From Mobula hypostoma (taxonomy: Eukaryota): a DNA stretch of 64,000 nt. The notes beneath the pieces are model-generated. The model was given only the letters and a program-made list of their open reading frames with translations. It had not been told where the DNA came from and did no database searches. The stretch lies in assembly GCF_963921235.1 (NCBI RefSeq), contig NC_086110.1:12958001-13022000 (forward strand), read 5' to 3'. A program made the position numbers and the translations under genes. Of this stretch, positions 6,688 to 48,688 are shown piece by piece (positions within the stretch are counted from its first letter, which is position 1; the number at the start of each line of letters is the position of its first letter).

Positions 6688-9346
6688 GAATGAGCACTAT
6701 TATTTTAAAATAACACGATCTTAACATGTTATTTAAACATATGCACGTAAAGCTTTAGAGTAAAAGATACTGTGTTTGCATGGAATTACTAATCAATTCC
6801 GCTGTTCCTCGGAATATTTACAAGAATCCTTGAAAATGTGAAATAATAATTGAAATAAAAGGAAACTACTCGGCTAATTCGGTGCGCCAGGCAGTGCGGG
6901 TTAAGGCATGCGGGTGTTTAATGTTTTGATCTGGAGGCTCGGGATTGGGAGTGTAGAGGGAAAATGCGCTCTATATAAATGTGAAAAGGAAGTGTACGAC
7001 CGGTGATAGATGGAACCAAGCTCGTTGGATGGAGTGGTGGAGTGTTTGCATGTGGAGCGAGAAAAATTTGATCCAATTTGCTCATTGCGGAATCCTGTAA
7101 AAACATGTAATAACGGGTCGAGTTAAACATGTTTTATGAAGCTTGATTAAAGGATATATATTGGACAGTTAATGGGAGATATCGCTATCATCCAAGAAAA
7201 CGATACCATGCGAGTAATGCTGCTCAGTCGGCAGTGCCAAGCGACCTTTATTTGAGATGTTTAGTGAAACGCATTTTGAGCGTAATTCATCCTCAGTGAT
7301 TTGCCGAAGCATTTTTAACCGAGATTTCGTCCTCTAATCCAGAAATTAACCAAAGTGAGAAGCTAAGGTTCAAATTTACGTCTGGTGTTTAGAGAACGAG
7401 ATATTGTTTATCGACAAAACTACAGCTTATCAGTTATTGGATTGTTTGTTAGTGGAGGAGTGTTTCTAAATAGATTATAACAACTCAAAGCAATAGAACT
7501 GCGGGGTGGGGGTCGGTGTGGAGGTGTCGTCGTAACAGCGTAGCAATTAGAGATGGCGCCCTCTCCAGGTCGTGACAGAACGCACTTGATTGGGATGATT
7601 CAGAGGAATTTACAAATTTACAGATATTTAAAATCCCTGAAACCGTTATCATTTATATTATTATTGTATTTATTTTCTATCTTCATTCGACTGTACTGAA
7701 ATATTTTTTTCTGATAAATATAGTGCACAGGATTAGAGAGGGCTTTTCTTTTGCGCAGGGCATTCTCCAGTGCGAGCAAATAATGATATATTTGAAATGA
7801 CGTTGAGCTGAGCTGAAACTGAATATGTCCTTAAAAGCACTTTGGAAAATATCACCAGCGCCTCGCAGTTGCTTGAGGAATTAGTCGACTCTTGTGACTG
7901 CCCTTCAGAGTAATAACAAACGGCTATTTGTGTTTTTTTATGAGTAGATGAAGAAATGAATAAGAAAGATAAGAGTACAAAGTTCCTGTCAACTACGAAC
8001 AAGATATAACTGTGCATTTTTAATTGAAAGTAAATACAGAACAATATTAAAAAGTGGAGAAATCGACGAGATTTGAGATGTGAAGGGAAATCTATCCCAG
8101 CCAGCATATCCAGCAGAACAGGTCTGAGCGGCCCACTCTTTTTTCCAGGCGTGTACGTTCTTATTATTTTTGCCAATTTCTCTGCATTACCGAAACTCTT
8201 TCCGAGAATAGGTTGTTGTTTGCATTATCAGACAGAGGATTTATTTCACTGCCTATGTTCCCTGTACCTACTCCCCACCTTCCTTAGTCCCTCACCTTAT
8301 CCCCCAACCACGTTGACCTGATGAGCAACAATAAAGTATTACTATAACAGGATACTCACCCTGTTGTGTCACATGTACATCTACCTGAACCGGAATTAAT
8401 GCGTCAATTTACTGACCATTGCCCAAATAAATGCTGGGCATATTGCAGACTTATTTCGCTCCATCAGGCAATTGGGAAGTTATTAATCGCCGTGGAGCTC
8501 TGTCCAAAGCACCATATTCTTCGAGGGTACACATCTAGACACGTGATTCCTGTAAATCTACTTTCCAACGTCTACAATTTTCAGTCAGATGTTATGATTA
8601 GACTAAACCTGATTTCCTTTAATGTGACCAGGTGCGTATCTCCTTGTTTGCGGGCTAGGACAGGTACACAGGTGGTGGTGCATTTCTCTCGCCTTTTGGG
8701 TGCCCTGGGATTTCTGTTACTATCATGTGGTAGTGCAGTTGCATTTTACAGCTAATTTTGAGCAACAATCCATGAATGTATACGAAACAGAAGAATACTG
8801 ATTTTTTTTATCATATGACATTTACTGATCAATATTCAAACACAGAGGTGTTATCGTGAGAACATGTTCCGATTTTTTTCACATCTTCTAATCTATATTT
8901 CCCTCGGTTGAACGTTGACATAAGTGAGCAAGAATAACTCTGCAGTTGACGGTATTTACCTTGAAAACAAAGTACTCTCGCTGGTGGTGACGAATCTCTC
9001 ATTTTTTTTTTCATATCTGAGGACTGTAGAGGGTGGGGCGGTACTTTAGGCCAAGTAGTTTTATTTCCTGGAATGATCGGGGAATGTTCAATGGAGATTC
9101 TGACCGGGTAGGAGAGACAGGCGGAACGGCTTATTCCTAATCTTATTCTTAATTTTTTTACTTTTATTCTTTCCAGTGATAATCGCTTCCAACAAATCGA
9201 AGACGAAATTGATCCCTTATCTTCCTAACTTATCCATGTGATCGATTAACAATCTTTGTCTGGAGGCAAGAAATGAAACGAATAAATGCCTCGGGTCTGC
9301 ACTCATTGATGGTCTATAGCTCTAAGCTGCAGTTGGATTCTCAGCT

Positions 9347-9478
9347 TCACAGTTTCTTTGATGTATTGACATCGGCGTACAATGCATGTTTGTTTTGATG
9401 TTTGGATGCTGGCGTGTTCTTAGAATCGGGAAACTGCAGAGCAGCGTAGGTCAGTTTGTCAGCTCCATTTCCTGTTGT
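9347..9478 (-). CDS. Terminal exon with two tyrosine motifs (LTYAAL = ITIM; ALYADV = ITIM-like)
   Basis: Acceptor attttcgcag, phase 0; TTGNGADKLTYAALQF...HALYADVNTSKKL*; minus-strand AATAAA at 9060-9065. Assignment to this gene is inferred from phase and motif pattern. Confidence 0.65.
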   Translation of the reverse strand, partial: TTGNGADKLTYAALQFPDSKNTPASKHQNKHALYADVNTSKKL

Positions 9479-12400
9479 CTGCGAAAATATTTCAAAATCA
9501 GGGGTTAATACAGAATCAATTGAGTTGAACAAATTGAATCAAGAATTGTAAAATAAATTAGTAATGCACTCATATGTTATCAATTTTAGATTTCAGCCGT
9601 TTTACACAAACGTTATGTCAACATTGTTTCAAAATGTTCCTTTTTGATTTAGTTGGCATTTCAACTCCAGGAGCCTGTGCTGTCCCACTGAACAATGAGC
9701 GTTTCTTTCCTTACTGAAAATGAACTTCAACAATATCGAGTTGGGAGAGTAGATAACTCCTTGCAGCAGCAGGTACAGTACAAAATATTTCCCTAACTCA
9801 ATATACAAGAGCATTGTTGTGTTATATTTGTCTGATTACCGCAAATCTTTAGTCTACAGATCTTATGGTGTTTCCTCAGTCACACCTGCCAACAGAATTC
9901 CAAATACACACAGACACTGTCATCAGTGGAGACCGCACAACTGATAGAATGAACGCTGGCAATTTGTTCATTCATGCCGTATGGTTACTGTTTTGTCACA
10001 GTTCGGTATTTCCATCAATGACACCAATGTTCGGTTGGTTCAGTGTTTCTCGGTTATTATCAGATATTCGAGTTCATTGTGGAGCTGATAATGAGCATTG
10101 GATAGGATGGCTATTCCTAGCTTCATGCTTTTTAGTGTTTCCACATTACATATGAAATTAAATTCATAAAAGCGAGGGTAAAAAAGATAATCTCAATGGA
10201 TTCTGCAGATGCTGGAAATCTTGAGGAATGCAAAAGAAATGTTATGTAATTCATTCGGTAAGGCAACATGCATGAAGGTAAATAAACTGCTGACGTTTCT
10301 GTCCGAAACGCTTTAGCAGGACACAGAAAGAAGGGGGTCAGAAGCTAGAATAGGAAGGTGGGGAATGAATACAAGATGACTAGTGATATGAGAAACCAGG
10401 TGGGAAAGAACGTGTGTTGATGATGGGGATGGAATGACTTAGAAGCTGGGAGGTGATGAGCGGAAAAGGAAAAGGGTGCAAGAAGGAATCTGATAGAAGG
10501 AGACAGTGGACCCCGGAAGAAATGGAAGAGGGAAGGGTACCAGTGGAGGTGAAGGGCAGATGAGGAGAAGAAATGAGGTGAAAGGGAGCCAGAATTGGGA
10601 ATGGAGAAAAAAATAGAAAGGGAACGATGAAATAAGCATTAAAAATTAGAGAGATCAATGTTCATGCCTTCAGGTTGGAGTCCATCCAGATGGAAGAAAA
10701 AAGTGATGATATTTCGAGGGTATTTAGTCGTAAATGGTACAATGACAAAGGTCATATCAGGTCTGTAAAATTAATCACCTTTGGAATATCGTTTATATAT
10801 ATGTTGGAATCGATTGTTAGGAATGAGATTACGGAGTACCTGGAGGTACATGACAAGTTAGGCCAAAGGCAGCATGGCTTTCTGATAGGAAAATCCTGCC
10901 AGTCTAACCTACCGCAACTTTTCGAGGAAATTGCTAGCAGAGTAGACAAAGGAGATGCAGTAGATGTGGTGCACTTGGATTTTCAGAAGGCCTTTGTCAA
11001 GGTGCCGCACATGAAGCTGCTTAGCAAGATAAGAGCCTATGGAATTACAGAAGCGTTACTAACATGGGTGGACATAGCTGATTGGCAGAAAACAGAGAGT
11101 GGAATAAAGGGATCCTATTCTGGCTGTCTACCCGTTACCAGCGGAGTTGCACAGGGGTTGGTGTTGCGACCCCTCCTTTTTATGATGCATGTCATTAAAT
11201 TGGAAGATGGGATTAATGGATTTTGGCTAAATTTGCCGATGATACAAAAATAGGTGGAGGGGCGGGTAAGTGCTGAGGAAACAGAGCCTGTAGAGAGACT
11301 TAGATAGTTAAAGGGAAAGGGCAAAGAAGTGGCAAATAAAATACAATGTTGGAAAGTGTATGGTCATGCACATTGGTGGAGGAAATAAACGTGCAGACTA
11401 TGATTTAGATGGGAAAAGAATTCAAAATGCCGAGATGCAAAGGGAATTGTGATTCCTTATGAAGGATATCTGAAAGGTCTCCAGGTTAAGTCGGTTGTGA
11501 AGAAGGCGAATGCAACGTTGGAATTCATTTCTCGAGGTATAGAATATAAGAACAGCGATGCGATGTTGAGGCTCTATGAGACACTCGTGAGACCACACTA
11601 GGAGTATTGTTTGCAGTTTTGGGGCTCCTTATTTTTGAAGGGATATGCTGACATCGGAGAGGGTTTAGAGAAGATTCACGAGAATGATTCCAGGAACGAA
11701 AGGGTTACCGTATGAGGAACGCCTGGCAGCTCTTGGGCTGTATTCCTTGGAGTTCAGGAGAATTGGGGCGGTGGGGGGGCGGGGGGGGGGTGGTGGGGAT
11801 CTCATAGAAAGATTCCGAATATTAAAAGGCTTGAACGGATTAGATGTGGCAAATTTATTTCCATGCTAGAGGAGTCTATGAGAAGAGGGCACAGCTTCAG
11901 GATTGAAGGATGTCCATTTAGAAAGAGGTGAGGAGGAATTACTTTAGTCAGAGGGTAGTAAATATGTGGAATTTGTTGCAATGAGCGACTGTGGAGGCCA
12001 AGTCATTGGGTGCTTTTAAGGCAGGGATAGAGCGATAGATACATTCTTGATTAGCCAGGGCATTAAAGGGTATGGGGAGAAGGCAGCGGATGTGGAGATG
12101 ACTGGAAGAATTGGATCAGCCCATGATTGAATGACGGAGCAGACACGATGGGCCGAATGGCCTACTTCTGCTTCTATATTTTATGGTCTTGTATATCTGT
12201 TTTGCGTGGCTCGGTACCGTAGCGGCTAGGTTAACACTATTACAGCAGCGGTGATCCAGGTTTAATTCCCGTAACCGACGAAATGGTGTGTTTCTATGTT
12301 TTCCCATGACCGTACGACTTTTTCTGGGCGCTCGGGTTACCTCCCACGTTCCAAAGACATACGGGTGAGTCGGCTAATAAGTCAGATGGGTGTAATTGGG

Positions 12401-15400
12401 TGGCACGAACTAGTTGAGCCGGACGGCTCTGTTACAGTGGCGTGCAAATTTTAGGTACCCCGGCCAAAATTTCTGTTACTGTGGATAGTTAAGTGAGTAG
12501 AAGAGGAACTGATCTCCAATAGTCATAAAATTAAAGGTGAAACATTCTTTTCAACATTTTAAGCAAGATTAGTGTGTTTTATTGTGCAATTTTAGCGTGA
12601 AAGAAAAGGAAATGAGCATCATGCAAATGTTTACGCACCCCAAGAGGTTTGAGCTCTCAGATAACTTTTACCAAGGTCTCAGACCTTAATTAGCATAAGG
12701 GCTATGGCTCGTTCACAGTTATCGTTAGGAAAGACAGGGTAATGCAAATTTTAAAGCTTTATTAGTACCCTGATTGTTCAAACCTTGTCCCAACAATCAG
12801 AAGCCATGGGCTCCTCTAAGCGGCTGCCTAGCACTCTGAAAATTAAAATAAATGATGCGCACAAAGCAGGAGAAAGCCATAAGAAGATCGCAAAGCGTCT
12901 TCAGGTAGCCGTTTCCTCAGTTCGTAATGTAATTAAGAAATGGCAGTTAACAGGAACGGTGGAGGTCAAGTTGAGGCCTGGAAGACCAAGAAAACTTTCC
13001 GAGAGAACTGCTTGTAGGATTGCGAGAAAGGCAAATCAAAACCCCATTTGACTGCAAAAGACCTTCAGGAAGAATGAGCAGACTCTGGAGTGGCGGTGCA
13101 CTGTTCTACCGTGCAGCGACACCTGCACAAATATGACCTTCATGGAAGAATCATCAGAAGAAAACCTTTCCTGCATCCTCATCACAAAATTCAGCGTCAG
13201 AAATTTGCAGAGGAACATCTAAACAAGCCTGATGCATTTTGGAAACAAGTCCCGTGGATTAATGAAGTTAAAATAGAACTTTTTGGCCGCAATGTACAAA
13301 GGAATGTTGGAGAAGAAAGTCTGCAGAATTTCATGAAATAAAAACACCTCTCCAACTGTTAAGCATGGGGGTGGATCGATCATTATGCTTTGGGCTTGTG
13401 TTGCAGCCAGTGGCACGAGGAGCAATTCACTGGTAGAGGGAAGAATGAATTCAATTAAATACCAGCAAATTCTGGAAGCAAACATCACACCGTCTGTAAA
13501 AAAGCTGAAGATGACAAGAGGATGGATGATGATGCTGAACACACCTCAAAATCCACAATGGACTACCTTAAGAGGCGCAAGCTGACGGTTTTGCCATGGC
13601 CCTCACAGTCCCCCGACCTGAATATCATCGAAAATCAGTGGATAGACCTGAAAAGAGCAGTGCATGCAAGACGGCCCAGAAATCTCACAGAACCAGAAGC
13701 CTTTTGCAAGGAAATATGGGCGAAGATCCCTCAAACAAGAATTGAAAGGCTCTTAGCTGGCTACAGAAAGCATTTACAAGCTGTGATACTTGCCAAAGGG
13801 GGTGTTACTATGTACTGACCATGCAGTGTGCCCAAAATTTTGCTTCGGGCCCTTTTCCTTTTTTTGTTATTTTAAAACTGTAAAAGAAGGAAATAAAAAA
13901 AGTAATCCTGCTTAAAATATTAAAGAAATGTGTGGACCTTTAACTTTATGCCTTTTGGAAATCAGGTCATCTTTTACTCGATCACAGTAACAGAAATTTT
14001 GTACAGTAGTGCCCAAACACGTGCATGCCACTGTATATCTTTAAAGCAAATCCAGATGTTATTCATGGCAATCTCTCTGCTTTACCTGAGAATAGATAAT
14101 GCATTCTTCTTGTTGTCGATCTTTGCGAAATCCTTTACTCTCCCTCATATTTAGTGAAACATGGGGAGTGGTGTGATCAACCGCAGCTTGGTCAGCCTGT
14201 TGGAAAAACACACTGAATACTGATAACTGATACAAGGTCAGTGATCATGAACTGTTTGGTTTGGAATATCTAATAATAGAAAAGGATTTTATAAATGTTC
14301 GGGATAACATTTTGTCCGCGTATTATGATATTGCCCGTATATCATACCGGAGGTGGGATACCAAACCCATTTCAGGCTGGGAGTCACTACGTTTACTTTA
14401 GATTTCCAAACAACCACTTAAAACCATCCTATCAATCGTATGGGTTTCTCAGGTCTGGCCATCTCTTTTGTTTTCATCTCTTCTGTCATATCCCTTACGC
14501 GCTTCCAAGTTTTGTGGACGGGCTTTATCCGATGCGTTTCTCTTAGCACCCCGTCAAATTATTATATTCATTGGGATGACGCGATTTCGTCCCCACAGTG
14601 CATTTAGAACCTGTGACCCTTCAAACTCGCATTACCTAGGTTAAGGACATTGGAAAAAATGACAAGACCTGATGTACGGTTCCCGCCTGGCTTAACTGAA
14701 GTAGCGAATACGGGAGGGGCATCTTGCCAGCTGTTGAGCTGAGTGGTGTTGCTGGTGTATCAATTAAATTACAATCGAAATAAGTAGAGCAGTTGGACAT
14801 GCCCGTTACAGTAAATGGTTTAAAAAGCATTTGTTTTGGCTGAAATAATGACACAGCATTCCAGAGCAATAAAACGACGGTAAAAAAAAATCTTAAACGT
14901 TGCAGCTTCAGCTTAGATATTACTCTCAGAAGCGGTCCTTCATTTCGGGAAGTGCTGCAAATGCTGATAGAAGTTTCAACAGAGTTCTACTATAATGAAA
15001 CCAGTGGTATATGACAACCTTGTTTTGGTGAAATGTTGCTGCAGCGAATATCGTAACGTAAAAGTAAAAATATGCGCTAAAATTGGGAAGGTAATTAATG
15101 AACACAACAAGTTTTTTCCCGTGTAGACAGATGGGTATATAACCGATAAAGGTTTAGTATATGCTGTTAGGAGGATCCAGGTGGGACACATTTAATAACA
15201 TTGAACTGCTGGAACTGTGAAGTGAAACAGACAAATAAGACACACAGTAGATCAGGAAACACGAGTGGAAAGAGAAACAGTTAACGTTTACGTTACTTTC
15301 CGGGGAGAGGTGTTCAATCCGAAAGGACAACGTTTTCTCTTTCCCAAGATGTCGTTGGAGATTTTAAATTTCTGGATTAAATCCAAAATGGGAGATGACA

Positions 15401-18400
15401 ATACATTTAGATGCTGCAGGCATTTCTTTCAAAAGTAGCCTCGTGGAGTAGAAGGCGCCTGGTGAAATTTCCTTAACATGTGGGCATCATTGTGCACCAG
15501 ATACTACACGGTTTATTGGAAGCATATTCGATTCCATTGCAGGTCATGCACTGTTCTGTGGATCTTTGTTGGGAATCGGTGTTAAAAACTCCCTATGACT
15601 TTCCAAAGCAAGATTTCGTTGCATTTTCAATTTTGCTTGCTGTGCGTTCAAATCAGATGTAACATATATTGCGAAATGCGAGTACTGTATTTTTCCATTG
15701 TGCACGACACAGCGATTCTCGTAAGCCGACATTTGACATCTAAAACATCTCAGTCTGAGACTTGTATTTAATTATTCATCAAACGAAGCGTGATTATCAG
15801 CATAACTTCCATTAGTATATATTACTGTTCATCTTAATGCAACCGGTAATGAACTGATGTGGAATCCTGAAAGACTATAGATTCAGATTCAATAGGACTA
15901 TTCAAATCTATCTTGGATAAAACTGCAAAATAAAGAGTTGTCAGGTAGTTTTATTGTTCCCTACTGCGTTCCAAATCTTAGAACAAAATAAATCTTAGGC
16001 GGGAGGACAAGATGGAGGCGCGCCGTGCGTACGCAGCTCTCCAGTGAAAAATGATATCGTATCTGCTAAAAAGGGGTCGTGGACAATTCTGATTTCATGG
16101 AGAATGGACGTGAAAGCACAGAGGAACATTCGCTGCTGTCGTTACTGTGAGGTCGTGGGTAAGCCTCAAAATCCCCGGCCTTGCCTGCTTTTGGCGACCG
16201 AGAAAGAGGTCGAATCGTTCGGACAGATATGGCACTCAGTACTCGTTATCGTAGAGCTGATCAGAGCTCGAAGTTTTCGGATTGCTCAGAGTCGGATTGC
16301 GGTCGGCATGGCAGGGAGAGTTTTTCTTCCGTCTCCCGTCTGCGTGAGATGTGGGACATTTGAGAAAGTTTGAACTTTACAGTGCTCACGGACTTCTTCA
16401 TCACGTTATGGTATTGTTGCACTGTTTATAACTATATGCTATAATTATGTTATTTTGTCAGTTTTTTCAGTCTTGGTTTGTCCTGTGTTTTGTGATATCA
16501 CACCGGAGGAAATAATGTATCATTTCTTAATGCATGCATTACTAAATGACAATAAAAGAGGACTACTTGTCTTCATAATCATAAATTTGAAATATTTAAG
16601 GTACGTTTGACGTTAGGCCGGTAATTTTGACGTCGGTAGTGGGTAAGTTATTGAAGGGAGTACTAAGAGACAGAATCTACAAGCATTTGGATAGACAGGG
16701 ACTACTTAGGGAGAGTCAACATGGCTTTGTGCGTGGTAGGTCATGTTTGACCAATCTATTGGAGTTTTTCTAGGAGTTTACCAGGAAAGTGGATGAAGGG
16801 AAGGCAGTGGATGTTGTCTGCATGGACTTAAGTAAAGCCTTTGCATGGGAGGTTAGTTCGGAAAATTCAGTCGCTAGGTATACATGGAGAGGTGGTAAAT
16901 TGGATTAGACATTGGCTCAATGGAAGAAGCCAAAGAGTGGTAGTAGAGCACTGCTTCTCAGAATGGAGACCTGTGACTAGTGGTGTGCCACAGGGAACAG
17001 TGCTGGGTCCATTGTTATTTGTCATCTATATCAATGATCTGGATGATAATGGGGTAAATTGGATCAACGAATTTCCTGAATATACAAAGATTGGAGGTGT
17101 ACTGGACAGTGAGGAAGGTTTTCGGAGCCCGCAGAAGGACTTGGACCAGCTGGAAAAATGGGCTGAAAAATGGCAGATAGGGTTTAATATAGACAAGTGT
17201 CAGGTATTGCACTTCGGGAGGACAAACCAAGGTAGAACATACAGGGTAAATGGTAAGGCACTGAGGAGTGCAGTAGAACAGAGGGATCTGGGAATACAGA
17301 TATAAAATTCCCTAAAAGTGGCGTCACAGGTAGATAGGGTCGTAAAGAGAGCTATTGGTACATTGGACTTTATTAATCAAAGTATTGAGTATAAGAGCTG
17401 GAATGTTATGATGTGGTTGTATAAGGCACTGGTGAGGCCGAATTTGGAGTATTGTGTTCAGGTTTGGTTACCAAATTACATGAAGAATATTAATAAGGTT
17501 GAAAGAGCTCAGAGAAGGTTTACAAGGATGTTGCAGGGACTTGAGAAACTGAGTTACAGAGAAAGGTTGAATAGGTTAGGACTTTATTCCCTGGAGCGTA
17601 GAAGAACGAGGGGAGATTTGATAGATGTAAATAAAATTATGATGGGTATAGATAGAGTGAATGTAAGCAGGCTTTTTCCACTGAGGCAAGGGGAGAAAAA
17701 AAACAGAGGACATGGTTTAAGGTTGAAGGGGGAAAAGTTTAAAAGAGGCTTCTTCACACTCAGAGTGGTGGGAGTGTGGAATGTGCTGCCAGACGAGGTG
17801 GTAAATGTGGGTTCTTTTTGAACATTTAAGAATAAATTGGACAGATACATGGGTGGGAGGTGTATTGAGGGATGTGGTCCGTGTGCAGGTCAGTGGGACT
17901 AGGCAGAAAATAATTCGGCGGAGCCAAGAAGGGCCAAAGGCCTGTTTCTGTGCTGTAGTTTTTCTATGGTTTCTATGGTTTTCTAGATCTCTGCTATACC
18001 TATACGCCGATCTCAAAGAAGTCAAGCCACTTCACTTACCAGCTCTTCACTCTGACATCTGTCCAAAGAACTTGTGTTAATCCCTTAAGAAAAATAAAAG
18101 AAATTATTTACATTGTAAAAGTTGGGCATTATTCGTTTGATACAAATAGAATTCATGGCGTAAGAGGAACTGCTGAAGGTGCGGATCTTTCAGAAAGCAT
18201 TTTGTGGTATTAGTTGTCTTAATACAGTGCATCAACATCATGGCACTATGCTCAAGAGTCTACGACATTTAAAGAAGTCGTAAAGTGATAATAGTATATG
18301 AGTGACTGTACAACATCTAAATTCTGTCGTTAAAATGGAAATTAAAATCAATGAGACATGCATGAGTTCGTCAATGTTCTTTAAACAGTGACAGTAAGCA

Positions 18401-21400
18401 TAGACCTACGCCAAACGTCTTACGCTTCCAAGTATAGACCTGCCATTGTATCCAAAACGACATTTACATTATTCCAAAGGGATATAACGGCATTTATGAA
18501 CAAGATACAGCCTGTAAATACAGCGAGCGGACTGGTGATATTATTGTATTTTAAATCCAGCTTGTGTTGTGCCTGATGATTATCAATGTAATCAGGTTCG
18601 ACCATGTCAATCCCTGTATAATCATGCCGTAATGACATTTATTCTTTTTGAAGTTAAATATCTTTAGCGCATCTATTTTGCACGAATAGAGGTAATATAT
18701 CTCAGTGATCAGGGTTCTTACCGTGCAATCTCTTTAACTTGACATTCACCAAAACTATTATCAGAGCTAAAATTGCCGATCCGCCCAGTGCACATGCCAG
18801 AATGAATTTAGTATCAGCGCCTTGTGGATCAACTGGGGGAAAACAAGAAACTGTGAAGTACTTATACATTTAAAAAAATGCGCACATGAGAATCAATAAT
18901 GCAAAATATCTAATAGGCTCCTTTCAAATCTCACTGCACAGTATCGGAAAATATGTCATAAGACAGGAAATGCAAATGCCCACCTTTGTTATATTTCGAT
19001 GAGATATAGAGCTTACGTTTTGCTTTCCACAATTTTGGCAAATGTTCAGATACTTACAAATACTGCACAAATTGAATTTCTTAATTCGTCCTACACGATT
19101 TAAACTAACGGAATAACACAAGTTTTTGAACACCTTTCACGTTCAATACTCACTATCAATTACTAAGCTTTAAAGTTAGTCAGTCTTCCGTGTTTGGGTA
19201 GCTGTTCAGTTACTGTTCTTAACAAGGTCACATTGACCCCACCACAATGACTTGTAAGCGCTTTCATCTTACATTGAGCACAAAAGATTCTGAACATGCT
19301 GAAATTCAGAATAACACATAAAATCCTGGAAGAACTCAGCCGATCAGACAGATCTAAAATGTCGACGTTTAAGGCCGAGATCCAACATCATGACTTCATC
19401 AAAACACCATCTTACCTTCGATGTAGCTGAAACTGGCAGACAACGTGAGGGAGCCATGCGACACCAGGCAGGTGTAAATATCTTTTCCCCAAGTAGACTG
19501 CGTAATTTCCAATAAACTAAGTACCTCATACAAGCCGTCCACGCTCCGGTTTGACACATTTTCTATTCCAGTGTGAATTTGCTTGTTATTTCTTTGCCAA
19601 ACGATTTTTAATTTCTCCGGGTAGAAGGCAGCCGTTTTACAAAGGAGCTTTCGAGGAGACGAAAACCCTCCAACAGGAACAATTTCCAGTAGAGTTGGAG
19701 GAGCTTGAGTCAAAACAGAGTTATATTGAGTATTTTCGATCCATTTGAGTACAGGTAATTTCACTTATCTCCTCTCCAACTAGGATGACGCTGAACTATC
19801 AAATCAGTTACCCGCCAGTATTAACCAGTATTTAATAAATTCTTCCAATTTCACGTTCTGTTTATTGTTGCTCAACCATACACACTCACACTCTGATGCA
19901 AAATACGGCATGACGCCTCACCAGTGCTTTATAAAGCCTGAATATTACATCCTTGCTTTTATATTCTAGTCCTCTTGAAATGAATGCGATAATCGGATTT
20001 GCCTTCCTGACCACAGACGCAACCTGCAAATTAACCTGTATGGAATACAGCACACGGACTCCCAAGTCCCTTACCACCTGAATGTTTTTTTGTGTTTTCT
20101 CTCCAGTTGGAAAATATTCAAAACTTTCACACCCTCCACCAAACTGCATGCCCACACACTTCTCGACACTGTATTCCATCTGCCGTTTCTTTGCCTGTCC
20201 TCCTAATCTGTGTCAGTCTTTCTGTAGCCTCTCTATATTTCCTAAAACTACCTGCCCGTCCACCTCTCTTCATATCGTCTGCAAACTTTGCAACAAAGCC
20301 ATCAATTCCACCATCCATATCATTGACATATAACCTTAAACGAATCGGTCACTTCACAGACCCCTGTCGAACACCGTTAGTCACGGGCAGCCAACCAGAA
20401 AATGCTCCCTTTATTCCAATTCTTTGTCACTTTCCAACCAGCCACTGCTTTATCCACCCTAAAATCTTCCTTGTTACACTTTGGGCTCGTAGTTTGTTTA
20501 ACAGCCTTGTGTGTGGTACCTTGTCAAAGGCCTTCTGAAAATCCAAGTACGCAACAACCGATTCTGCTTATCTTTATCTATCCTGCTTTTCATTCCTTCA
20601 AATAATTCAATCAAATTTGTCTGGCGAGAGTTTCCTTTGAGGATATCATGCTGACAATGGCGTGTTTTATTATGTGTCTCCAAGTAACCTAACACCTGAT
20701 CCTTAATGATGAACTCCAACATCTTGTCAACCAGTGAGGTCAGACTGACTGGCCTACAGTTTCCCTTTTCTGTTTCTCTGCTTTCTTGAAGAGTGGAGTG
20801 ACATTTGTAATTTTCCAGTCTTCCAGAACCATTCCAGACTCTAGTAATTCTTGAAAGACCTTTACTAATGCCTCCAGAATCTATCAACAACTTTTATCAG
20901 AATCATGGTATGTACATCATCTGGTCCAGGTGAATTACCTAACCAGAACTTTCAGTTTCCCAAGAACTTGCACTCCAATTATGTCTCTAGTTTTGCCGTT
21001 GTTCAAGATAGACTCTCGGAATAAACCGGGATAATATAGACCAGTTGATATTACAGTGAAGTGGGTAATTTATTGGAAGATATTCGAAAGAATAGGATAG
21101 ATAAATATTGAGATAGACTGGGCTTGTTTGGGAATAAGCAACGTTATTTTGTGCAATGTAGGCTCTGTCTAACCATCTTAATGAACTTTTCGAGCGGGTT
21201 CCCATAGATCTTGATGAAGGATAACAGTGGATATGGTCAATATGGATTTTAGCAAGAGCTTTGGAAAAGTTCTGCATGGGGACGGTGGGCTGATCAAATA
21301 CGTTCGCTTGGCATTCAGGATGAAGGAGGAAATGGAATCTAACTTTGGCTTCGCGGGAGAAGCCAGAGTCTGGTAATAGATGGTTGTTCTTTGAACGTAG

Positions 21401-23460
21401 GCCTTTGACTGGTGGTGTGCCGCATGGCGACCAAAGAATGCAGCGGGTTATGGACCAGGTATAAAAATGCGTTGAAAATGGCAGATAAAATTTAATGACG
21501 GTAACTGTAAGCTGTTGTTCTTTGAGAAGACAAACCATCTCGGATATACACAGTGAACGAAACTGGCATTGTGGAGTGCGGTAAAAAATGATCTTGGAAT
21601 ATAGATTGATAATTCATTGAAACTGGAGCAAAAGGCGGTGGTATCGTAAAGATAACCTTTGTCATATTGGACCTCATATATCAGAGTATTGAGTGTAAAA
21701 GTTGGAATGCTATGATGAAGTTGCATTGGACGTTAGTGAGAACAAATTTGGAGTATTGTTCACAGTTCTGGTTAATTATCTGCAGGAAAGTTATCAATAT
21801 GATTGAATGAGTACAGAACAACTTACAAGATGTGGCATGAATTTGAGGACATGGATTATGAGGAAAGGTTTAACAGGTAAGGATTGTTTGAATGGTTCAT
21901 AAGAGCACGAGCGAACATTTGATAGAGGTATACAAAATTATGAGGGATGTAGATCTGGTACATGTCAGCCTGCATCATCCACTGAGGTTGGGTGAGAATG
22001 TAACTGGAATTCATAGCTTCATAGTGAAAGGAAAAGTATTAAAGCCGAACCTGATGGGAAATGTCTTCACTCTGATGGTGATGCTATTGTGGAACGAGCT
22101 GCCAGCGGAGGTGTTTGCACTCGACTCCCTGCGCTTTACTATCCAACCCTATCAAAATTCACCTTAACCCTGAGAGGTCTATATTTCTCACAATTTGTAT
22201 GGTGAAAGAAGTATAGATTTTGCTAACCCTGCATGACAAAAGTTGGAATGACAATTTGCAGTGCAGGCGATAAATTGTTACTTGATGTTGGAATTAACTC
22301 ATTTGGAGCTGGGTATTATTTCTGTCTACTTGTTGATGGGGAAATGGAGCATTGTGCTGCTGCAGGCAGATCCTTTGATAGAGATTACTCTATTTAAGTA
22401 TTAATATTTTGCGTCCTCTGTGATGCGGAATCGAGTTATCCAACTCCAGCCATTCACATTAATATTAATATTATTTCAGCCTCTTGCTTGCAACAAAATC
22501 CTAACCTTACTTGAAAAGTAATTCGTTATATTCAAAGTACCTTCGCGATAGTGAGGGTGAAGTCCTAAGATATCACTAACCTTGGAAATTCGGTTTATTT
22601 GGGAGATAGCTGATGAGCAGGGCTCGACGAACAGCAGTGGGAAAGAGCCGAGGAAGTACGATATGATAAACATAATCAACTCCATTATGCGCCTAATAGT
22701 TGCTACATGAAATGTGATTAATTCTTCTGTTCTTTATAATTCTGAATTGAGAATCCCTGAACTGGGTATATTTTCCGCGGGAAAAAAATGTATTCTCGCC
22801 GTTTGTTTAATCAACCAGAAACATTTCGTTTTATCCTCATCACTAAGTTGGATGTAAAATGCACAGAGCCGAAAATCTCCAAACAGCCACACTCACCGAA
22901 CACAGTGAGGCTGGTGCCACAGCTACTCTCGAAAAATTGCTCCTGAAACCTTCCGCCACAGTAATATAGTCCAGAGTCGCTGAAGGTGACATTCCAGAGT
23001 ACAAGCGTTCCTCTTCTCTTTTCTACAGTGAATTGTCTTCTGCTGTCCCTTTCTAAAAACCCCTTCTCGCCTTTCCTCCACCAACGAACGTCAACGGTAT
23101 CGTGTGTTAGTGGTAATTTGCAGAACATCGTAACATTCGCACCAACCGGGACGTTCAGGTCCCGAGGGAATTGAGATACTTCCTTCGCCGTTACTTTGAC
23201 GACTGCCGGAAAAGTAAGCAAGGGTATTAACAACAGTTAAACACAGTGAATTAACAAAAACCAATGACATAAGTCACTGGGCAACTAAGAGCGAAAGACG
23301 GCCGAATAGATGAAAAAATATAACTGAGTATGCTGCAGGCACCCAGAGTTAAATATTAATAAATAGAATATTCAATTCGGAAACGGCGTGTATAAATCAG
23401 CATACTTAGCCAAGTAATAGCCAGAAGTGCCATGTACGAAACCGTAAACTTCTCCGCCAT
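9347..23460 (-). CDS. Six-exon Ig-superfamily receptor gene: leader - VJ - C1 - TM - cytoplasmic ITIMs (311 aa; VJC1/PRARP/SIRP-like architecture)
   Basis: Exons 23406-23460, 22897-23202, 19416-19703, 18722-18832, 18040-18083, 9347-9478 total 936 nt (312 codons incl. stop). All introns are GT-AG with phases 1,1,1,1,0, giving one open frame. The link to the terminal exon is the least certain part. Confidence 0.85.
10190..10690 (-). mobile_element. Penelope-like element 3' terminal remnant
   Basis: Reverse complement resembles the 3' region of the Penelope copy at 40450-41010 (GATGCTGG/CCAGCATCTGCAG end, purine-rich tract). Confidence 0.6.
10775..12192 (+). mobile_element. 5'-truncated decayed CR1 LINE
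   Basis: QHGF..GKSC..LDFQKAF..GVAQGLVL..; LGLYSLEFRR; 3' UTR with GGGCCGAATGGCCTACTTCTGC and tail. Confidence 0.85.
12205..12434 (+). mobile_element. tRNA-derived V-SINE (HE1-like)
   Basis: A/B-box-like head, V-domain-like core GGGCGCTCGGGTTACCTCCCACGTTCCAAAGAC, CR1-like tail interrupted by Tc1. Confidence 0.7.
12435..14033 (+). mobile_element. Tc1/mariner DNA transposon, full length, inactive
   Basis: TA|CAGTGGC...GCCACTG|TA with TA TSD; inner direct repeats (IR/DR type); transposase pieces GRPRKLS, WINEVK, KHGGGSI, WPSQSPDLNIIEN broken by stop, frameshifts and a deletion. Confidence 0.95.
16002..16570 (+). mobile_element. Non-autonomous interspersed element, copy 1
   Basis: Starts GGAGGACAAGATGGAGGCG and ends AATAAAAGAGGACTAC; homologous to 52603-53248. 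Confidence 0.7.
16610..17985 (+). mobile_element. CR1 LINE (family A), 5'-truncated
   Basis: RT GVPQGTVLGP, C-terminal FFTLRVVGVWN; (TTCTATGG)n tail; closely matches 48950-50335. Confidence 0.93.
18040..18083 (-). CDS. Exon 5, short cytoplasmic exon (GINTSSLDRCQSEEL)
   Basis: Strong acceptor tttcttttatttttcttaag and donor gtaagtg; phase 1 to 0 bridges the TM exon to a phase-0 terminal exon. Confidence 0.75.
18722..18832 (-). CDS. Exon 4, transmembrane segment
   Basis: DPQGADTK-FILACALGGSAILALIIVLVNV-KLKRLH: 22 uncharged residues then a basic stop-transfer run; acceptor tttcttgttttcccccag, donor gtaag. Confidence 0.88.
19416..19703 (-). CDS. Exon 3, C1-set Ig domain
   Basis: LLCKTAAFYPEKLKIVW...NRSVDGLYEVLSLL...W..DIYTCLVSHGSL: CxxxxFYP, W, DGxY and YxCxVxH C1 signatures; donor gtaag, phase 1-1. 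Confidence 0.93.
19885..20960 (-). mobile_element. Decayed CR1 RT fragment (in intron 2)
   Basis: CRPVSLTS, LRTWIFRRP (shifted LDFQKAFDK), GFVAKFADD, LEYKSKDV..LYKALVR on the minus strand. Confidence 0.85.
20990..22120 (+). mobile_element. Old CR1 fragment (in intron 2)
   Basis: Degenerate DFSKAF, GVPQG and LIEVYKIMR..FTLMVMLLWNELP motifs. Confidence 0.65.
22897..23202 (-). CDS. Exon 2, V-type Ig domain with fused J-like G strand
   Basis: VSQFP...NVTMFC...VRWWRK...TLVLWNVTFSDSGLYYC...FESSCGTSLTVF; acceptor cttttccggcag, donor gtgagt, phase 1-1. Confidence 0.93.
23406..23460 (-). CDS. Exon 1, signal peptide (MAEKFTVSYMALLAITWL)
   Basis: ATG at 23460-23458, hydrophobic leader, phase-1 donor GTATGC; completes ...WLIVKVTA|KEVSQ with exon 2. 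Confidence 0.85.
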
Positions 23461-34070: not shown

Positions 34071-35786
34071 TACTTTGGTTTTGTCTTCACTAAGGAGGAC
34101 ATAAATAATCTTCCGGAAATAGTAGGGGACAGAGGGTCCAGGGAAATGGAGGAACTGAGGGAAATACATGTTAGTAGGGAAGTGGTGTTAGGTAAATTGT
34201 AGGGATTAAAGGCAGATAAATCACCAGGACCAGATGGTCTGCATCCCAGAGTGCTTAAGGAAGTAGCACAAGAAATAGTGGATGCATTAGTGATAATTTT
34301 TCAAAACTCTTTAGATTCTGGACAAGTTCCTGAGGATTGGAAGGTGGCTAATGTAACCCCACTTTTTAAAAAAAAGGAGGGAGAGAGAAACCAGGGAATT
34401 ATAGACCGGTTAGCCTAATATCGGCGGTGGGGAAACTGCTAGAGTCAGTTATCAAAGATGTGATACAGCACAGTTGGAAAGTGGTGAAATCATCGGAGAA
34501 AGTCAGCATGGATTTATGAAAGGAAAATCATGTCTGACGAATGTAACTAGTAGAGTGGATAGGGGAGAACCAGTGGATGTGGTATACTTGGATTTTCAAA
34601 AGGCTTTTGCAAGGTCCCACACAGGAGATTAGTGTGCAAACTTAAAGTACACGGTATTGGGGGTAAGGTGTTGATGTGGATAGAGAATTGGTTGGAAGAC
34701 AGGAAGAAAAGAGTGGGAATAAATGGGACTTTTTCAGAATGGCAGGCAGTGACCAGTGGGGTACCGGAAAGCTCAGTGCTGGGACCCCAGTTGTTTACAA
34801 TATATATTAATGACTTGGATGAGGGAAATAAATGCAGCATCTCCAAGTTTGCGGATGACACGAAGCTGGGCGGTAGTGTTAGCTGTGAGGAGGATGTTAA
34901 GAGGATGCAGGGTGACTTGGATAGGTTAGGTGAGTGGACAAAGTCACGGCAGATGCAATTTAATGTGGATAAATGTGAAGTTATCCACTTTGGTGGCAAA
35001 AGGAGGGAAACAGATTATTATCTGAATAGTGGCCGATTAGGAAAAGGGCAGGTGCAACGAGACCTGGGTGTCATTATACACAAGTCATTGAAACTGGGCA
35101 TGCAGGTACAGCAGGCGGTGAAAAAGGCGAATGGTATGCTGGCATTTAAAGCAAGAGGATTCGAGTACAGGAGTAGGGAGGTACTACTGCAGTTGAACAA
35201 AGCCTTGGTGAGACCACACCTGGAGTATTGTGTGCTGTTTTGGTCCCCTAATCTGAGGAAAGACATCCTTGCCATAGAGGGAGTACAAAGAAGGTTCACC
35301 AGATTGATTTCTGGGATAGCAGGACTTTCATAGGCTGAAAGAGTGGATGAACTAGGCTTATACTCGTTGGAATTCAGAAGATTGAGGGGGGATCTGATTG
35401 AAACGTATAAAATCCTAAAGGGATTGGACAGGCTAGATGCAGGAAGATTGTTCCCGATGTTGGGGAAGTCCAGAACGAGGGGTCACAGTTTGAGGATAAA
35501 GGGGAAGCCTTTTAGGACCGAGATTAGGAAAAACTTCTTCACACAGAGAGTGGTGAATCTGTGGAATTCTCTGCCACAGGAAACAGTTGAGGTCAGTTCA
35601 TTGGCTATATTTAAGAGGGAGTTAGATATGGCCCTTGTGGCTAAAGGGTTCAGTGGCTATGGAGGGTAGGCTGGTACAGGGTTCTGAGTTGGGTGATCAG
35701 CCATGATCATACTGAATGGCGGTGCAGGCTCGAGGGGCCGAATGGCCTACTCCTGCACCAATTTTCTATGTTTCTATGTTTCTATG
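34071..35786 (+). mobile_element. CR1 LINE (family B), 5'-truncated, young
   Basis: Very similar to 46962-48688; few disabling changes (indels, stop at 35331); (TTCTATGT)n tail. Confidence 0.97.
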
Positions 35787-45557: not shown

Positions 45558-48500
45558 CGGGGGCTACTGAGGTGACTTTAAACTAGAATGGTTGGGGGGT
45601 GGGAATCAAATTAAAGCGGCTAGGTGTGAGGAGGTTAGTTCACAACAGAGGGATGGGAACCAGTGCAGAGAGGCAGAGGGGTGTAAAGTGAGCGTAGAAG
45701 CAAAAAGTACAAAGGGGAAAAGTAAAAGTGGCAGGCCGACAAATCCAGGGCAAGCATTAAAAAGGGCTAAGAGAGTTGTAAAAGAGCGCCTGAAGGCTTT
45801 ATGTGTCAATGCAAGGAGCATTCGTAATATGGTGGATGAATTGAAAGTGCAGATTGTTATTAATGATTATGATATAGTTGGGATCACAGAGACATGGCTC
45901 CAGGGTGACCAGGGATGGGAGCTCAACGTTCAGGGATATTCAATATTCAGGAGGGATAGACACGAAGGAAGGGGAGGTGGGGTGGCGTTGCTGGTTAAAA
46001 AAGAGATTAACGCAATAGAAAGGAAGGACATAAGCCGGGAAGATGTGGAATCGATATGGGTAGAGCTGCGTAACACTAAGGGGCAGAAGACGCTGGTGGG
46101 AGTTGTGTACAGGCCACCTAACAGTAGTAGTGAGGTCGGAGATGGTATTAAACAGGAAATTAGAAATGTGTGCAATAAAGGAACAGCAGTTATAATGGGT
46201 GACTTCAATCTACATGTAGACTGGGTGAACCAAATTGGTAAAGGTGCTGAGGAAGAGGATTTCTTGGAATGTATGCGGGATGGTTTTTTGAACCAACATG
46301 TCGAGGAGCCGACTAGAGAGCAGGCTATTCTGGACTGGGTTTTGAGCAATGAGGAAGGGTTAATTAGCGATCTTGTCGTGAGAGGCCCCTTGGGTAAGAG
46401 TGACCATAATATGGTGGAATTCTTCATTAACATGGAGAGTGACGTAGTTAATTCAGAAACAAAGGTTCTGAACTTAAAGAGGGGTAACTTTGAAGGTATG
46501 AGACATGAATTAGCTAAGATAGACTGGCAAATGACACTTCAAGGATTGACGGTTGATATGCAATGGCAGGCATTTAAAGGTTGCATGGATGAACTACAAC
46601 AATTGTTCATCCCAGTTTGGCAAAAGAATAAATCAAGGAAGGTAGTGCACCCGTGGCTGACAAGAGAAATTAGGGATAGTATCAATTCCAAAGAAGTAGC
46701 ATACAAATTAGCCAGAGAAAGTGGCTCACCTGAGGACTGGGAGAAATTCAGAGTTCAGCAGAGGAGGACAAAGGGCTTAATTAGGAAGGGGGAAAAAGAT
46801 TATGAGAGAAAACTGGCAGAGAACATAAAAACGGACTGTAAAAGCTTTTATAGATATGTAAAAAGGAAAAGACTGATAAAGACAAATGTAGGTCCCCTGC
46901 AAACAGAAACAGGTGAATTGATTATGGGGAGCAAGGACATGGCAGACCAATTGAATAATTACTTTGGTTCTGTCTTCACTAAGGAGGACATAAATAATCT
47001 TCCAGAAATAGTAACGGACAGAGGGTCCAGTGAGATGGAGGAACTGAGCGAAATACATGTTAGTAGGGAAGTGGTGTTAGGTAAATTGAAGGGATTGAAG
47101 GCAGATAAATCCCCAGGGCCAGATGGTCTGCATCCCAGAGTGCTTAAGGAAGTGGCCCAAGAAATAGTGGATGCATTAGTAATAATTTTTCAAAACTCGT
47201 TAGATTCTGGACTAGTTCCTGAGGATTGGAGGGTGGCTAATGTAACCCCACTTTTTAAAAAAGGAGGGAGAGAGAAACCGGGGAATTATAGGCCGGTTAG
47301 CCTAACGTCGGTGGTGGGGAAACTGCTGGAGTCAGTTATCAAGGATGTGATAACAGCACATTTGGAAAGCGGTGAAATGATCGGACAAAGTCAGCATGGA
47401 TTTGTGAAAGGAAAATCATGTCTGACGAATCTCATAGAATTTTTTGAGGATGTAACTAGTAGAGTGGATAGGGGAGAACCAGTGGATGTGGTATATTTGG
47501 ATTTTCAAAAGGCTTTTGACAAGGTCCCACATAGGAGATTAGTGTGCAAACTTAAAGCACACGGTATTGGGGGTAAGGTATTGGTGTGGGTGGAGAATTG
47601 GTTAGCAGACAGGAAGCAAAGAGTGGGAATAAACGGGACCTTTTCAGAATGGCAGGCGGTGACTAGTGGGGTACCACAAGGCTCAGTGCTGGGACCCCAG
47701 TTGTTTACAATATATATTAATGAGTTGGATGAGGGAATTAAATGCAGCATCTCCAAGTTTGCGGATGACACAAAGCTGGGTGGCAGTGTTAGCAGTGAGG
47801 AGGATGCTAAGAGGATGCAGGGTGACTTGGATAGGTTGGCTGAGTGGGCAAACTCATGGCAGATGCAATTTAATGTGGATAAATGTGAAGTTATCCACTT
47901 TGGTGGCAAAAATAGGAAAACAGATTATTATCTGAATGGTGGCCGATTAGGAAAAGGGAAGGTGCAACGAGACCTGGGTGTCATTATACACCAGTCATTG
48001 AAAGTGGGCATGCAGGTACAGCAGGCGGTGAAAAAGGCGAACGGTATGCTGGCATTTATAGCGAGAGTATTCGAGTACAGGAGCAGGGAGGTACTACTGC
48101 AGTTGTACAAGGCCTTGGTGAGACCACACCTGGAGTATTGTGTGCAGTTTTGGTTCCCTAATCTGAGGAAAGACATCTTTGCTATAGAGGGAGTACAAAG
48201 AAGGTTCACCAGATTGATTCCTGGGATGGCAGGTCTTTCATATGAAGAAAGACTGGATGAACTGGGCTTGTACTCGTTGGAATTTAGAAGATTGAGGGGG
48301 GATCTGATTGAAACGTATAAGATCCTAAAGGGATTGGACAGGCTAGATGCGGGAAGATTGTTCCCGATGTTGGGGAGGTCTAGAACGAGGGGTCACAGTT
48401 TGAGGATAGAGGGGAAGCCTTTTAGGACCGAGGTTAGGAAAAACTTCTTCACACAGAGAGTGGTGAATGTGTGGAATTCTCTGCCACAGCAAACTATTGA

Positions 48501-48688
48501 GGCCAGTTCATTAGCTATGTTTAAAAGGAAGTTAGATATGGCCCTTGTGGCTACAGGGGTCAGGGGGTATGGAGGGAAGGCTGGGTTCTGAGTTGGATGA
48601 TCAGCCATGATCATAATAAATGGCGGTGCAGGCTCGAAGGGCCGAATGGCCTACTCCTGCACCTATTTTCTATGTTTCTATGTTTCTA
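45558..48688 (+). mobile_element. CR1 LINE family B inserted in family A; retains ORF1 tail and complete ORF2
   Basis: Junctions ...GAAACAAG| and |(AAG)TAGTGAG reconstitute the host CR1; (TTCTATGT)n tail. Confidence 0.97.
45592..48591 (+). CDS. CR1 ORF2: APE endonuclease + reverse transcriptase, uninterrupted 999 codons
   Basis: NARS, GITETW, YRPP, GDFN, LDWV, SDHN; YRPVSLTS, QHGF, LDFQKAFDKV, GVPQGSVLGP, KFADD; C-terminal FFTQRVVNVWNSLP. The listed start codon is TTG, not ATG. Confidence 0.97.
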   Translation: MGGGNQIKAARCEEVSSQQRDGNQCREAEGCKVSVEAKSTKGKSKSGRPTNPGQALKRAKRVVKERLKALCVNARSIRNMVDELKVQIVINDYDIVGITETWLQGDQGWELNVQGYSIFRRDRHEGRGGGVALLVKKEINAIERKDISREDVESIWVELRNTKGQKTLVGVVYRPPNSSSEVGDGIKQEIRNVCNKGTAVIMGDFNLHVDWVNQIGKGAEEEDFLECMRDGFLNQHVEEPTREQAILDWVLSNEEGLISDLVVRGPLGKSDHNMVEFFINMESDVVNSETKVLNLKRGNFEGMRHELAKIDWQMTLQGLTVDMQWQAFKGCMDELQQLFIPVWQKNKSRKVVHPWLTREIRDSINSKEVAYKLARESGSPEDWEKFRVQQRRTKGLIRKGEKDYERKLAENIKTDCKSFYRYVKRKRLIKTNVGPLQTETGELIMGSKDMADQLNNYFGSVFTKEDINNLPEIVTDRGSSEMEELSEIHVSREVVLGKLKGLKADKSPGPDGLHPRVLKEVAQEIVDALVIIFQNSLDSGLVPEDWRVANVTPLFKKGGREKPGNYRPVSLTSVVGKLLESVIKDVITAHLESGEMIGQSQHGFVKGKSCLTNLIEFFEDVTSRVDRGEPVDVVYLDFQKAFDKVPHRRLVCKLKAHGIGGKVLVWVENWLADRKQRVGINGTFSEWQAVTSGVPQGSVLGPQLFTIYINELDEGIKCSISKFADDTKLGGSVSSEEDAKRMQGDLDRLAEWANSWQMQFNVDKCEVIHFGGKNRKTDYYLNGGRLGKGKVQRDLGVIIHQSLKVGMQVQQAVKKANGMLAFIARVFEYRSREVLLQLYKALVRPHLEYCVQFWFPNLRKDIFAIEGVQRRFTRLIPGMAGLSYEERLDELGLYSLEFRRLRGDLIETYKILKGLDRLDAGRLFPMLGRSRTRGHSLRIEGKPFRTEVRKNFFTQRVVNVWNSLPQQTIEASSLAMFKRKLDMALVATGVRGYGGKAGF

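Follow-up and report, generated by a model that had tools for sequence, protein, structure and literature searches.

A stretch of 64,000 nucleotides (nt) of the Mobula hypostoma genome (contig NC_086110.1, positions 12,958,001 to 13,022,000 of the forward strand, assembly GCF_963921235.1; hereafter the window) carries on its minus strand an intact gene for a membrane protein with two immunoglobulin (Ig) domains. With a probability of roughly 0.7, we read this locus as the gene of an inhibitory type I receptor that has a tail like that of SIRP-alpha and a predicted function, and that belongs to a multigene family of cartilaginous fish. The deduced protein consists of a signal peptide, a short non-rearranging V domain, one C1-set domain, an uncharged transmembrane (TM) helix and a SIRP-alpha-like tail built of two repeats. 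It most resembles SIRP; orthology is not established by sequence, and because the protein has a single C1 domain and a truncated V domain we do not file it as SIRP.

How the receptor might work can be sketched by analogy with SIRP-alpha. The V domain would bind a ligand, Src-family kinases would phosphorylate the tail motifs LTYAAL and ALYADV, and perhaps IIYSQT, and the phosphotyrosines would recruit the tandem SH2 domains of SHP-1/SHP-2. This would damp signalling, also from activating paralogues, in the manner of SIRP-alpha/SIRP-beta and further paired receptors. The gene is one of many paralogues and its protein has already been predicted by RefSeq, so that the novelty suggested by a preliminary description of this sequence is reduced to a family that is apparently unstudied: we came upon no description of it when we searched the literature on cartilaginous fish for SIRP, NKp30 or paired receptors.

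An intact gene with seven coding exons

The coding sequence (limits 23460..9347) runs from an ATG at 23460 to a TGA at 9349-9347 in seven exons (Table 1). Every junction is GT-AG and in frame, and there are no internal stops. The preliminary description had joined six exons in one frame; these six do give 311 amino acids (aa), but a seventh, exon 5b, had been missed, and the product is 344-348 aa. We located exon 5b because in the closest full-length relatives exon 5 and the last exon are separated by a further ~37 residues; it shows 95% identity to the matching part of one paralogue, P0151. Exon 5 was chosen from ten frame-compatible 44-nt AG...GT candidates in a 9-kb gap as the one with the strongest acceptor and donor, and is 100% identical to P0151 and to the RefSeq protein. 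The C1 exon and the last exon are each 93% identical to P0151.

RefSeq predicts the product of this gene as XP_062923461.1 (P0207), under the name "natural cytotoxicity triggering receptor 3 ligand 1-like". Exon 1 is 100% identical to its N-terminus, and our 348-aa model matches it at 100% over 344 aligned positions, the sole difference being VDPQ at the exon 3-4 junction. This difference reflects two in-phase acceptors of the TM exon, 12 nt apart. The upstream one (18832) is a strong polypyrimidine-CAG site that adds VDPQ and gives 348 aa. RefSeq picks the weaker downstream AAG site (18820), which gives 344 aa, and the RNA contigs of this copy leave the choice unsettled.

Table 1. Coding exons of the receptor gene, in window coordinates
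Exon	Position	Strand	Description
1	23406..23460	-	55 nt; start codon and most of the signal peptide; ends in phase 1; GT donor at 23405
2	22897..23202	-	306 nt, phase 1-1; short V-set Ig domain whose J-like G strand (SSCGTSLTVF) lies in the same exon
3	19416..19703	-	288 nt, phase 1-1; C1-set Ig domain, CKTAAFYPE ... YTCLVSH
4	18722..18832	-	111 nt; stalk, uncharged TM helix, KLKRLH stop-transfer; acceptor 18832 or 18820
5	18040..18083	-	44 nt; cytoplasmic, encodes INTSSLDRCQSEEL
5b	14086..14196	-	111 nt, phase 0-0, 37 aa; TPHVSL (lost tyrosine motif) and IIYSQT; CAG/GTAAAG splice sites
Last	9347..9478	-	LTYAAL (ITIM), ALYADV (ITIM-like), TGA; 3' untranslated region reaches at least 9003
ITIM, immunoreceptor tyrosine-based inhibitory motif.

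Gene models of the relatives point to possible isoforms. The RefSeq isoform of paralogue P0153 (312 aa) omits the equivalent of exon 5b, so a 311-aa isoform may also be made from the present gene. The model of paralogue P0155 reads through the exon 5 donor into a short tail without tyrosine motifs, and since the same read-through frame aligns at 17989-18084, a tail-less isoform is conceivable here. In P0166, a close relative on a 33.7-kb contig of Mobula birostris, the RefSeq isoform omits the C1 exon and joins V to TM, as the 1-1 phase permits.

Transcription and splicing

Four RNA runs were found, of which one (X2) supports this gene; another (X1) differs from it by 5-7%. In X2, read depth lies on exon bins and is zero in intron bins free of transposable elements (TEs). 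Contigs of X2 with 0-1 mismatch cover the V exon and end exactly at its acceptor, 23202, with 18 unaligned letters beyond, and others of the same quality cover 9003-9199 and 9271-9485. One of these, 248 nt long with one mismatch, spans 9271-9485 and continues for 33 letters, of which the 30 shown match the window exactly from 14093 onward. The seven letters before those 30 are absorbed in the alignment, intron and exon 5b agreeing there at 6/7 letters. The match of these loose letters demonstrates that exon 5b (14086) is spliced to 9478. The exon at 9.4 kb is the true last exon. The junction pattern of the preliminary description is therefore only partly borne out, in that spliced contigs exist and the last exon is joined to exon 5b, not to exon 5; no contig for this gene in the runs examined joins exon 5 directly to the 9.4-kb exon.

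Run X1 carries DRQEEE, as M. birostris proteins do. Given this and its 5-7% divergence, X1 comes from another species and supports only the splicing pattern of the family. Both runs contain an exon 3-4 joint that leads from 19416 to 18824 with two extra letters and encodes YIEEQGAD, which is of the paralogue type (YIxEQGAD). We rejected this joint as evidence for the acceptor of the present copy, as its sequence fits the paralogues. The gene is real and transcribed, and two of its splice junctions are seen in RNA.

A short V domain with its own G strand

Exon 2 encodes a V-set domain (Pfam PF07686, 5.8e-11) that carries its own G strand and is spliced directly to the C1 exon. The domain is short, with 53 residues between its two cysteines (Cys46 to Cys100). 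For paralogue P0151, an AlphaFold2 model based on the family alignment (pLDDT, the predicted local distance difference test score, 71-93 in the ectodomain blocks) shows strands A, A', B, C, D, E, F and G and no C''. A single-sequence model of the V exon was discarded (pLDDT 60). In an hhalign comparison with a SIRP-like protein of the coelacanth, ~11 residues of the C'-C'' region are absent from the V domain. The consensus G strand of the family is GxGTxLxV, e.g. GSGTKLTV. In the present copy and its nearest relatives it reads SSCGTSLTV, in which the first glycine of GxG is replaced and a cysteine is added.

That V and J-like sequence lie in one germline exon, as the preliminary description held, is thus borne out by the G strand and its splicing to C1, with the qualification that the J motif is degenerate. 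Its further statement that no recombination signal sequence (RSS) separates V from J also stands. One relaxed RSS-like string occurs within the V exon (23061-23024, minus strand), with GGTTTTTAG as nonamer, a 22-nt spacer and CACTGTA as heptamer. It lies inside the codons that specify GFLERDSRRQFTV, and the 14-kb gene has no other match of this kind. As ~0.3 matches are expected per 14 kb, and as the string is sited off the F-G junction, it is probably due to chance.

We compared the V exon, and a V-only profile of the family, with the PDB. Both queries gave I-set and Ig V domains similar scores (for the profile, 27.5 bits per domain for titin and about 30 bits for Ig V), and hence the V domain is not specifically antigen-receptor-like. 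NKp30, the SIRP V domain and the IgNAR V domain were all absent from the top 60 matches of either query. A lead towards IgNAR V (the top Atlas cluster was labelled 'putative Antigen receptor') was dropped for this reason, and similarity of the V exon to CD79a/b (E 2e-5 to 5e-3) proved to be only generic short-V likeness. These data do not support one origin proposed for the gene, namely that a germline-joined antigen-receptor V was recruited as an innate inhibitory receptor: the V domain is short and lacks C'-C'', Ig and T-cell receptor (TCR) V domains score no better than I-set, and the same architecture recurs across rays, sharks and chimaera.

The V exon looks like a mosaic. Its B-C-C' part (KLPLTHDTVDVRWWRKGEKGFLER) is identical to that of P0211 and near-identical to that of the activating paralogue P0162, and its F-G part (FQEQFF.SSCGTSLTVF) matches P0151. 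This pattern in the sequences suggests gene conversion or exchange among paired-receptor paralogues.

C1 domain, membrane segment and tail

Exon 3 encodes one true C1-set domain, as first described (PF07654, 1.6e-13, 51 bits), scoring far above C2-type models. In the PDB, UrIg2 and Ig heavy-chain constant domains match it best, and the models for B7/butyrophilin C domains stay below threshold (PF22705, 17.9 bits; PF08205, 15 bits). The TM segment, FILACALGGSAILALIIVLVNV, has no charged residue, again in agreement with the preliminary description. Two ITIM-type motifs had been claimed for the tail, of which LTYAAL is canonical and ALYADV, with alanine at Y-2, is ITIM-like only.

The tail is about 100 residues long and keeps three tyrosines, in IIYSQT (exon 5b), LTYAAL and ALYADV, the last two 23 residues apart. 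Its relatives have four tyrosines in two similar repeats (e.g. P0191, ILTYAAV ... SSYAQV ... GLTYATV ... NTEYAEL), the pattern being two copies of a unit [x-T-Y-A-x-L ... basic stretch ... x-Y-x-x-V/T]. In the present copy the second repeat consists of LTYAAL and ALYADV, and the first of TPHVSL followed by IIYSQT. Paralogues have TEYAPL, TAYASL or TPYASL at the TPHVSL site. The tyrosine-to-histidine change is common to P0151 and to P0208 and P0209 of M. birostris, and is therefore old. The features of the ITIM functional class are all present. The tail has LTYAAL, the TM is uncharged, and some paralogues combine nearly the same ectodomain with a TM arginine.

A chondrichthyan family with paired forms

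An exhaustive HMMER search with the C1 exon returned single-domain relatives (44-88% identity) amid many multi-C1 proteins. We collected 34 relatives in a search with P0003 and 41 with the family alignment. All that have a named source are chondrichthyan, and two are unnamed fragments from Logan assemblies. Members occur in Mobula, Hypanus, Hemitrygon, Pristis, Scyliorhinus, Chiloscyllium, Heterodontus, Heptranchias, Mustelus and Callorhinchus, i.e. in rays, sawfish, sharks and chimaera. The search with the family alignment, run at E<=1e-8, thus brought up no tetrapod SIRP-alpha. The blocks WW(R/K)xGE, DSGxYYC, GxGTxLxV, PPTPL, CKTAAFYPE and YTCLVSH are conserved in the family.

Several members (P0162, P0158) are of the activating type: their TM contains an arginine (LIFRSALGG...), and their tails are short. 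In a maximum-likelihood (ML) tree of the ectodomains they group with the inhibitory P0211 and P0153 at 100/99 support, and this clustering of forms with a TM arginine among inhibitory forms is a signature of paired receptors. In the same tree, the M. hypostoma/M. birostris pair P0151/P0208 forms the sister group of the window gene (100/97). The V domain of the window gene is 82% identical to that of P0151, compared to 92-100% for its other exons. It is a diverged yet intact and expressed paralogue.

Two relatives, P0169 (Chiloscyllium) and P0054 (Amblyraja), have two near-identical C1 copies each. These models represent recent exon duplication or an artefact of gene model or assembly, and not the old V-C1-C1 arrangement of SIRP.

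Relationship to SIRP and rival readings

Of three origins first proposed for the gene (a relic of the antigen-receptor precursor, a SIRP-like receptor or the germline-joined V discussed above), the SIRP-like one is best supported. When the model of P0151 was searched against Swiss-Prot with Foldseek, SIRP-alpha took ranks 1, 2, 6 and 11 (best E 1e-17). When the family profile was searched against the PDB, the SIRP-alpha ectodomain (2wng) came 9th of 11,759 matches, with V and first C1 in one stretch, among multi-domain Ig chains and UrIg2. The hhalign comparison with the coelacanth SIRP-like protein (P0203) gave 98.9% probability and E 2.4e-17, colinear over V and C1. P0203 is itself V-C1-TM, with a lysine in the TM. 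A search with it returned only coelacanth paralogues, none with an ITIM tail, and a Pogona 'SIRP-alpha-like' hit was set aside as a SIRP reference because it is a multi-domain protein without a tail. The conserved ITIMs of SIRP-alpha are ITYADL and LTYADL, accompanied by a TEYASI motif, and LTYAAL is identical to LTYADL at 5/6 positions (PMC5413580).

Several observations weigh against an inhibitory receptor with a SIRP-alpha-like tail. In the Foldseek search SIRP-alpha leads by no more than about two orders of magnitude in E-value, B7-H3, PD-L1, TAPBPL, TCR-beta and B7H6 following at 2e-15 to 3e-14, and the structure search of the PDB is led by TCR-beta and Ig light chains (E about 2e-15). 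Only LTYAAL fits the ITIM consensus, which leaves just one strict ITIM. RNA depth is low (2-6) and was found in one of three runs of the species, with tissue not specified, and the direct exon 3-4 junction of this copy was not seen in the RNA contigs. In the ectodomain tree the terminal branch of the window gene exceeds those of the nearest relatives tenfold (0.10 versus about 0.01); together with the lost tyrosine and the altered G strand, it could reflect relaxed constraint.

A broader proposal is that the family is the cartilaginous-fish counterpart of SIRP, so that the common ancestor of jawed vertebrates would already have had a V-C1 receptor that bore a double-ITIM tail of the SIRP-alpha type and was accompanied by activating partners. 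We regard this as possible, and rather doubtful.

The gene could instead be a surviving non-rearranging VJ-C1 descendant of the antigen-receptor precursor that preceded RAG, forming its own lineage beside UrIg/UrIg2, NKp30 and PRARP and not being kin of SIRP. A V domain with its own G strand followed by C1 is the topology of an antigen-receptor chain, the best matches among solved structures are the TCR-beta and Ig light chains, and those of the C1 domain are UrIg2 and Ig heavy-chain constant domains. Moreover, the family dates to the shark/chimaera split, and its consensus has retained GxGTxLxV. The V-only profile, however, scores I-set about as high as Ig V, and NKp30, IgNAR V and SIRP V all fall outside the top 60. 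A UrIg2-like shark protein (P0002) aligns more weakly in hhalign (E 3e-10), in a shifted register that pairs C1-C1 with V-C1, and the tail and paired organisation are typical of innate regulatory receptors. Such a descent would, in addition, be compatible with the SIRP-like reading, as a kinship of SIRPs with the antigen-receptor precursor is itself a long-standing proposal (PMC2785349). We consider this origin, which had also been put forward in the preliminary description, unlikely.

Somewhat less probable still is that the locus is a decaying or neofunctionalised copy, e.g. a decoy or a weakly signalling paralogue. Four features speak for it: the first family tyrosine is lost (TPHVSL), G-x-G is broken and an unpaired cysteine added, the terminal branch is long, and V is less similar to the nearest paralogue than are the other exons. 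Yet all seven exons are open with canonical splice sites, and the gene is transcribed and spliced. The lost tyrosine and SSCGT are common to P0151, P0208 and P0209, and so have been kept since before the species split, and rapid change of V is normal for the ligand-binding domains of paired receptors.

The least probable reading, that the protein is a B7H6-like or B7-type ligand shown to a receptor on other cells, follows the RefSeq automatic name and the presence of B7-H3, PD-L1, B7H6 and butyrophilins within Foldseek hits 3-27 (Swiss-Prot), and is opposed by a second domain that is C1-set (51 bits) and below the B7/butyrophilin thresholds, by the receptor features of a J-like G strand, an ITIM tail and partners with a TM arginine, and by the conflicting labels that automatic annotation has given to members of the family (SIRP-alpha-like, B7H6-like, TCR-beta-like, Ig-lambda-like, MHC II-like, PD-L1-like and tapasin-related). 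The name "NCR3 ligand 1-like" is a misleading automatic label.

Remainder of the window

A tblastn search with 19 family proteins found no second family member in the 64-kb window, and no further Ig exon was found there. The rest of the window holds only transposon remains and no other host gene. In the introns and flanks of the receptor gene, TE remains lie at 10675-13818, 16627-17821, 34632-35333, 45592-50080 and 63373-63963, and include reverse-transcriptase (RT) fragments, a transposase of the Tc1/Sleeping-Beauty type and a fragment of a retroviral-type integrase. A near-full ORF2 of a CR1/LINE element (999 aa, endonuclease and RT) is also present. The TE copies of the window are abundant in RNA contigs, with depths in the thousands.

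Implications

To our knowledge, C1-set domains are almost confined to molecules of antigen recognition. If the family described here is related to SIRP, receptors of the inhibitory V-C1 kind would go back to the earliest jawed vertebrates. Were the family the counterpart of SIRP, it would provide, beside UrIg/UrIg2, a second non-rearranging VJ-C1 lineage in which to test the form of the pre-RAG receptor and the cells that carried it. For comparative immunology, the family, which is conserved and has expanded in sharks, rays and chimaera, would be a tractable set of genes for studies of ligand, expression and signalling. What is new here is the corrected gene model, the RNA junctions, the repeat structure of the tail and its partial decay, and the position of the gene among paired paralogues; the window gene adds one diverged member with a corrected model, and not a new principle.

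Comparison with known systems

Ig light chains and TCR-beta share the V-C1 two-domain topology. The present family differs from Ig and TCR in having no V/J segments and no functional RSS, many fixed germline copies and a V domain without C''. It also carries an ITIM-type tail, whereas Ig and TCR chains signal through partners (CD79, CD3) that bear immunoreceptor tyrosine-based activation motifs.

NKp30, Xenopus VJC1 and chicken PRARP are non-rearranging VJ genes that have been discussed as antigen-receptor relics (PMC10751288). Like the family, they have a J-like motif (GxGT.L.V type) in a germline V. NKp30, however, is a single V without a C domain and has an arginine in the TM and a short tail, whereas the receptor described here has a C1 domain, an uncharged TM and a tail of ~100 residues. 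Elasmobranchs also have the non-rearranging VJ-C1 genes UrIg and UrIg2, of which UrIg2 contains 9-11 C domains and forms Fc-like dimers, with no ITIM reported (PMC12227049). Like the present gene, they belong to cartilaginous fish and encode VJ in one non-rearranging exon, with a split leader and C1-type domain(s) following. They differ in having three or more C domains as opposed to one, and the present family is multigene, with inhibitory and activating forms.

The closest parallel is with SIRP. From SIRP the receptor differs in its single C1 domain (SIRP is V-C1-C1), in a V domain without ~11 residues of the C'-C'' region present in SIRP V, in activating partners that use arginine rather than lysine in the TM, and in a sequence identity of only about 17-21%. 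The SIRP-alpha tail has four tyrosines, including that of SEYASV, its tyrosine motifs are spaced 24-26 residues apart, and its ITIMs bind SHP-1/2; here the first of four tail tyrosines is lost, and ALYADV and IIYSQT are non-canonical. What the two share is an N-terminal V domain with a J-like G strand leading directly into C1-set domain(s), an uncharged TM in the inhibitory form, repeated tail motifs of the form (I/L)TYAxL ... xYAxV/I at a spacing of 23-26 residues, and sister genes that have the same ectodomain but a basic TM residue and a short tail.

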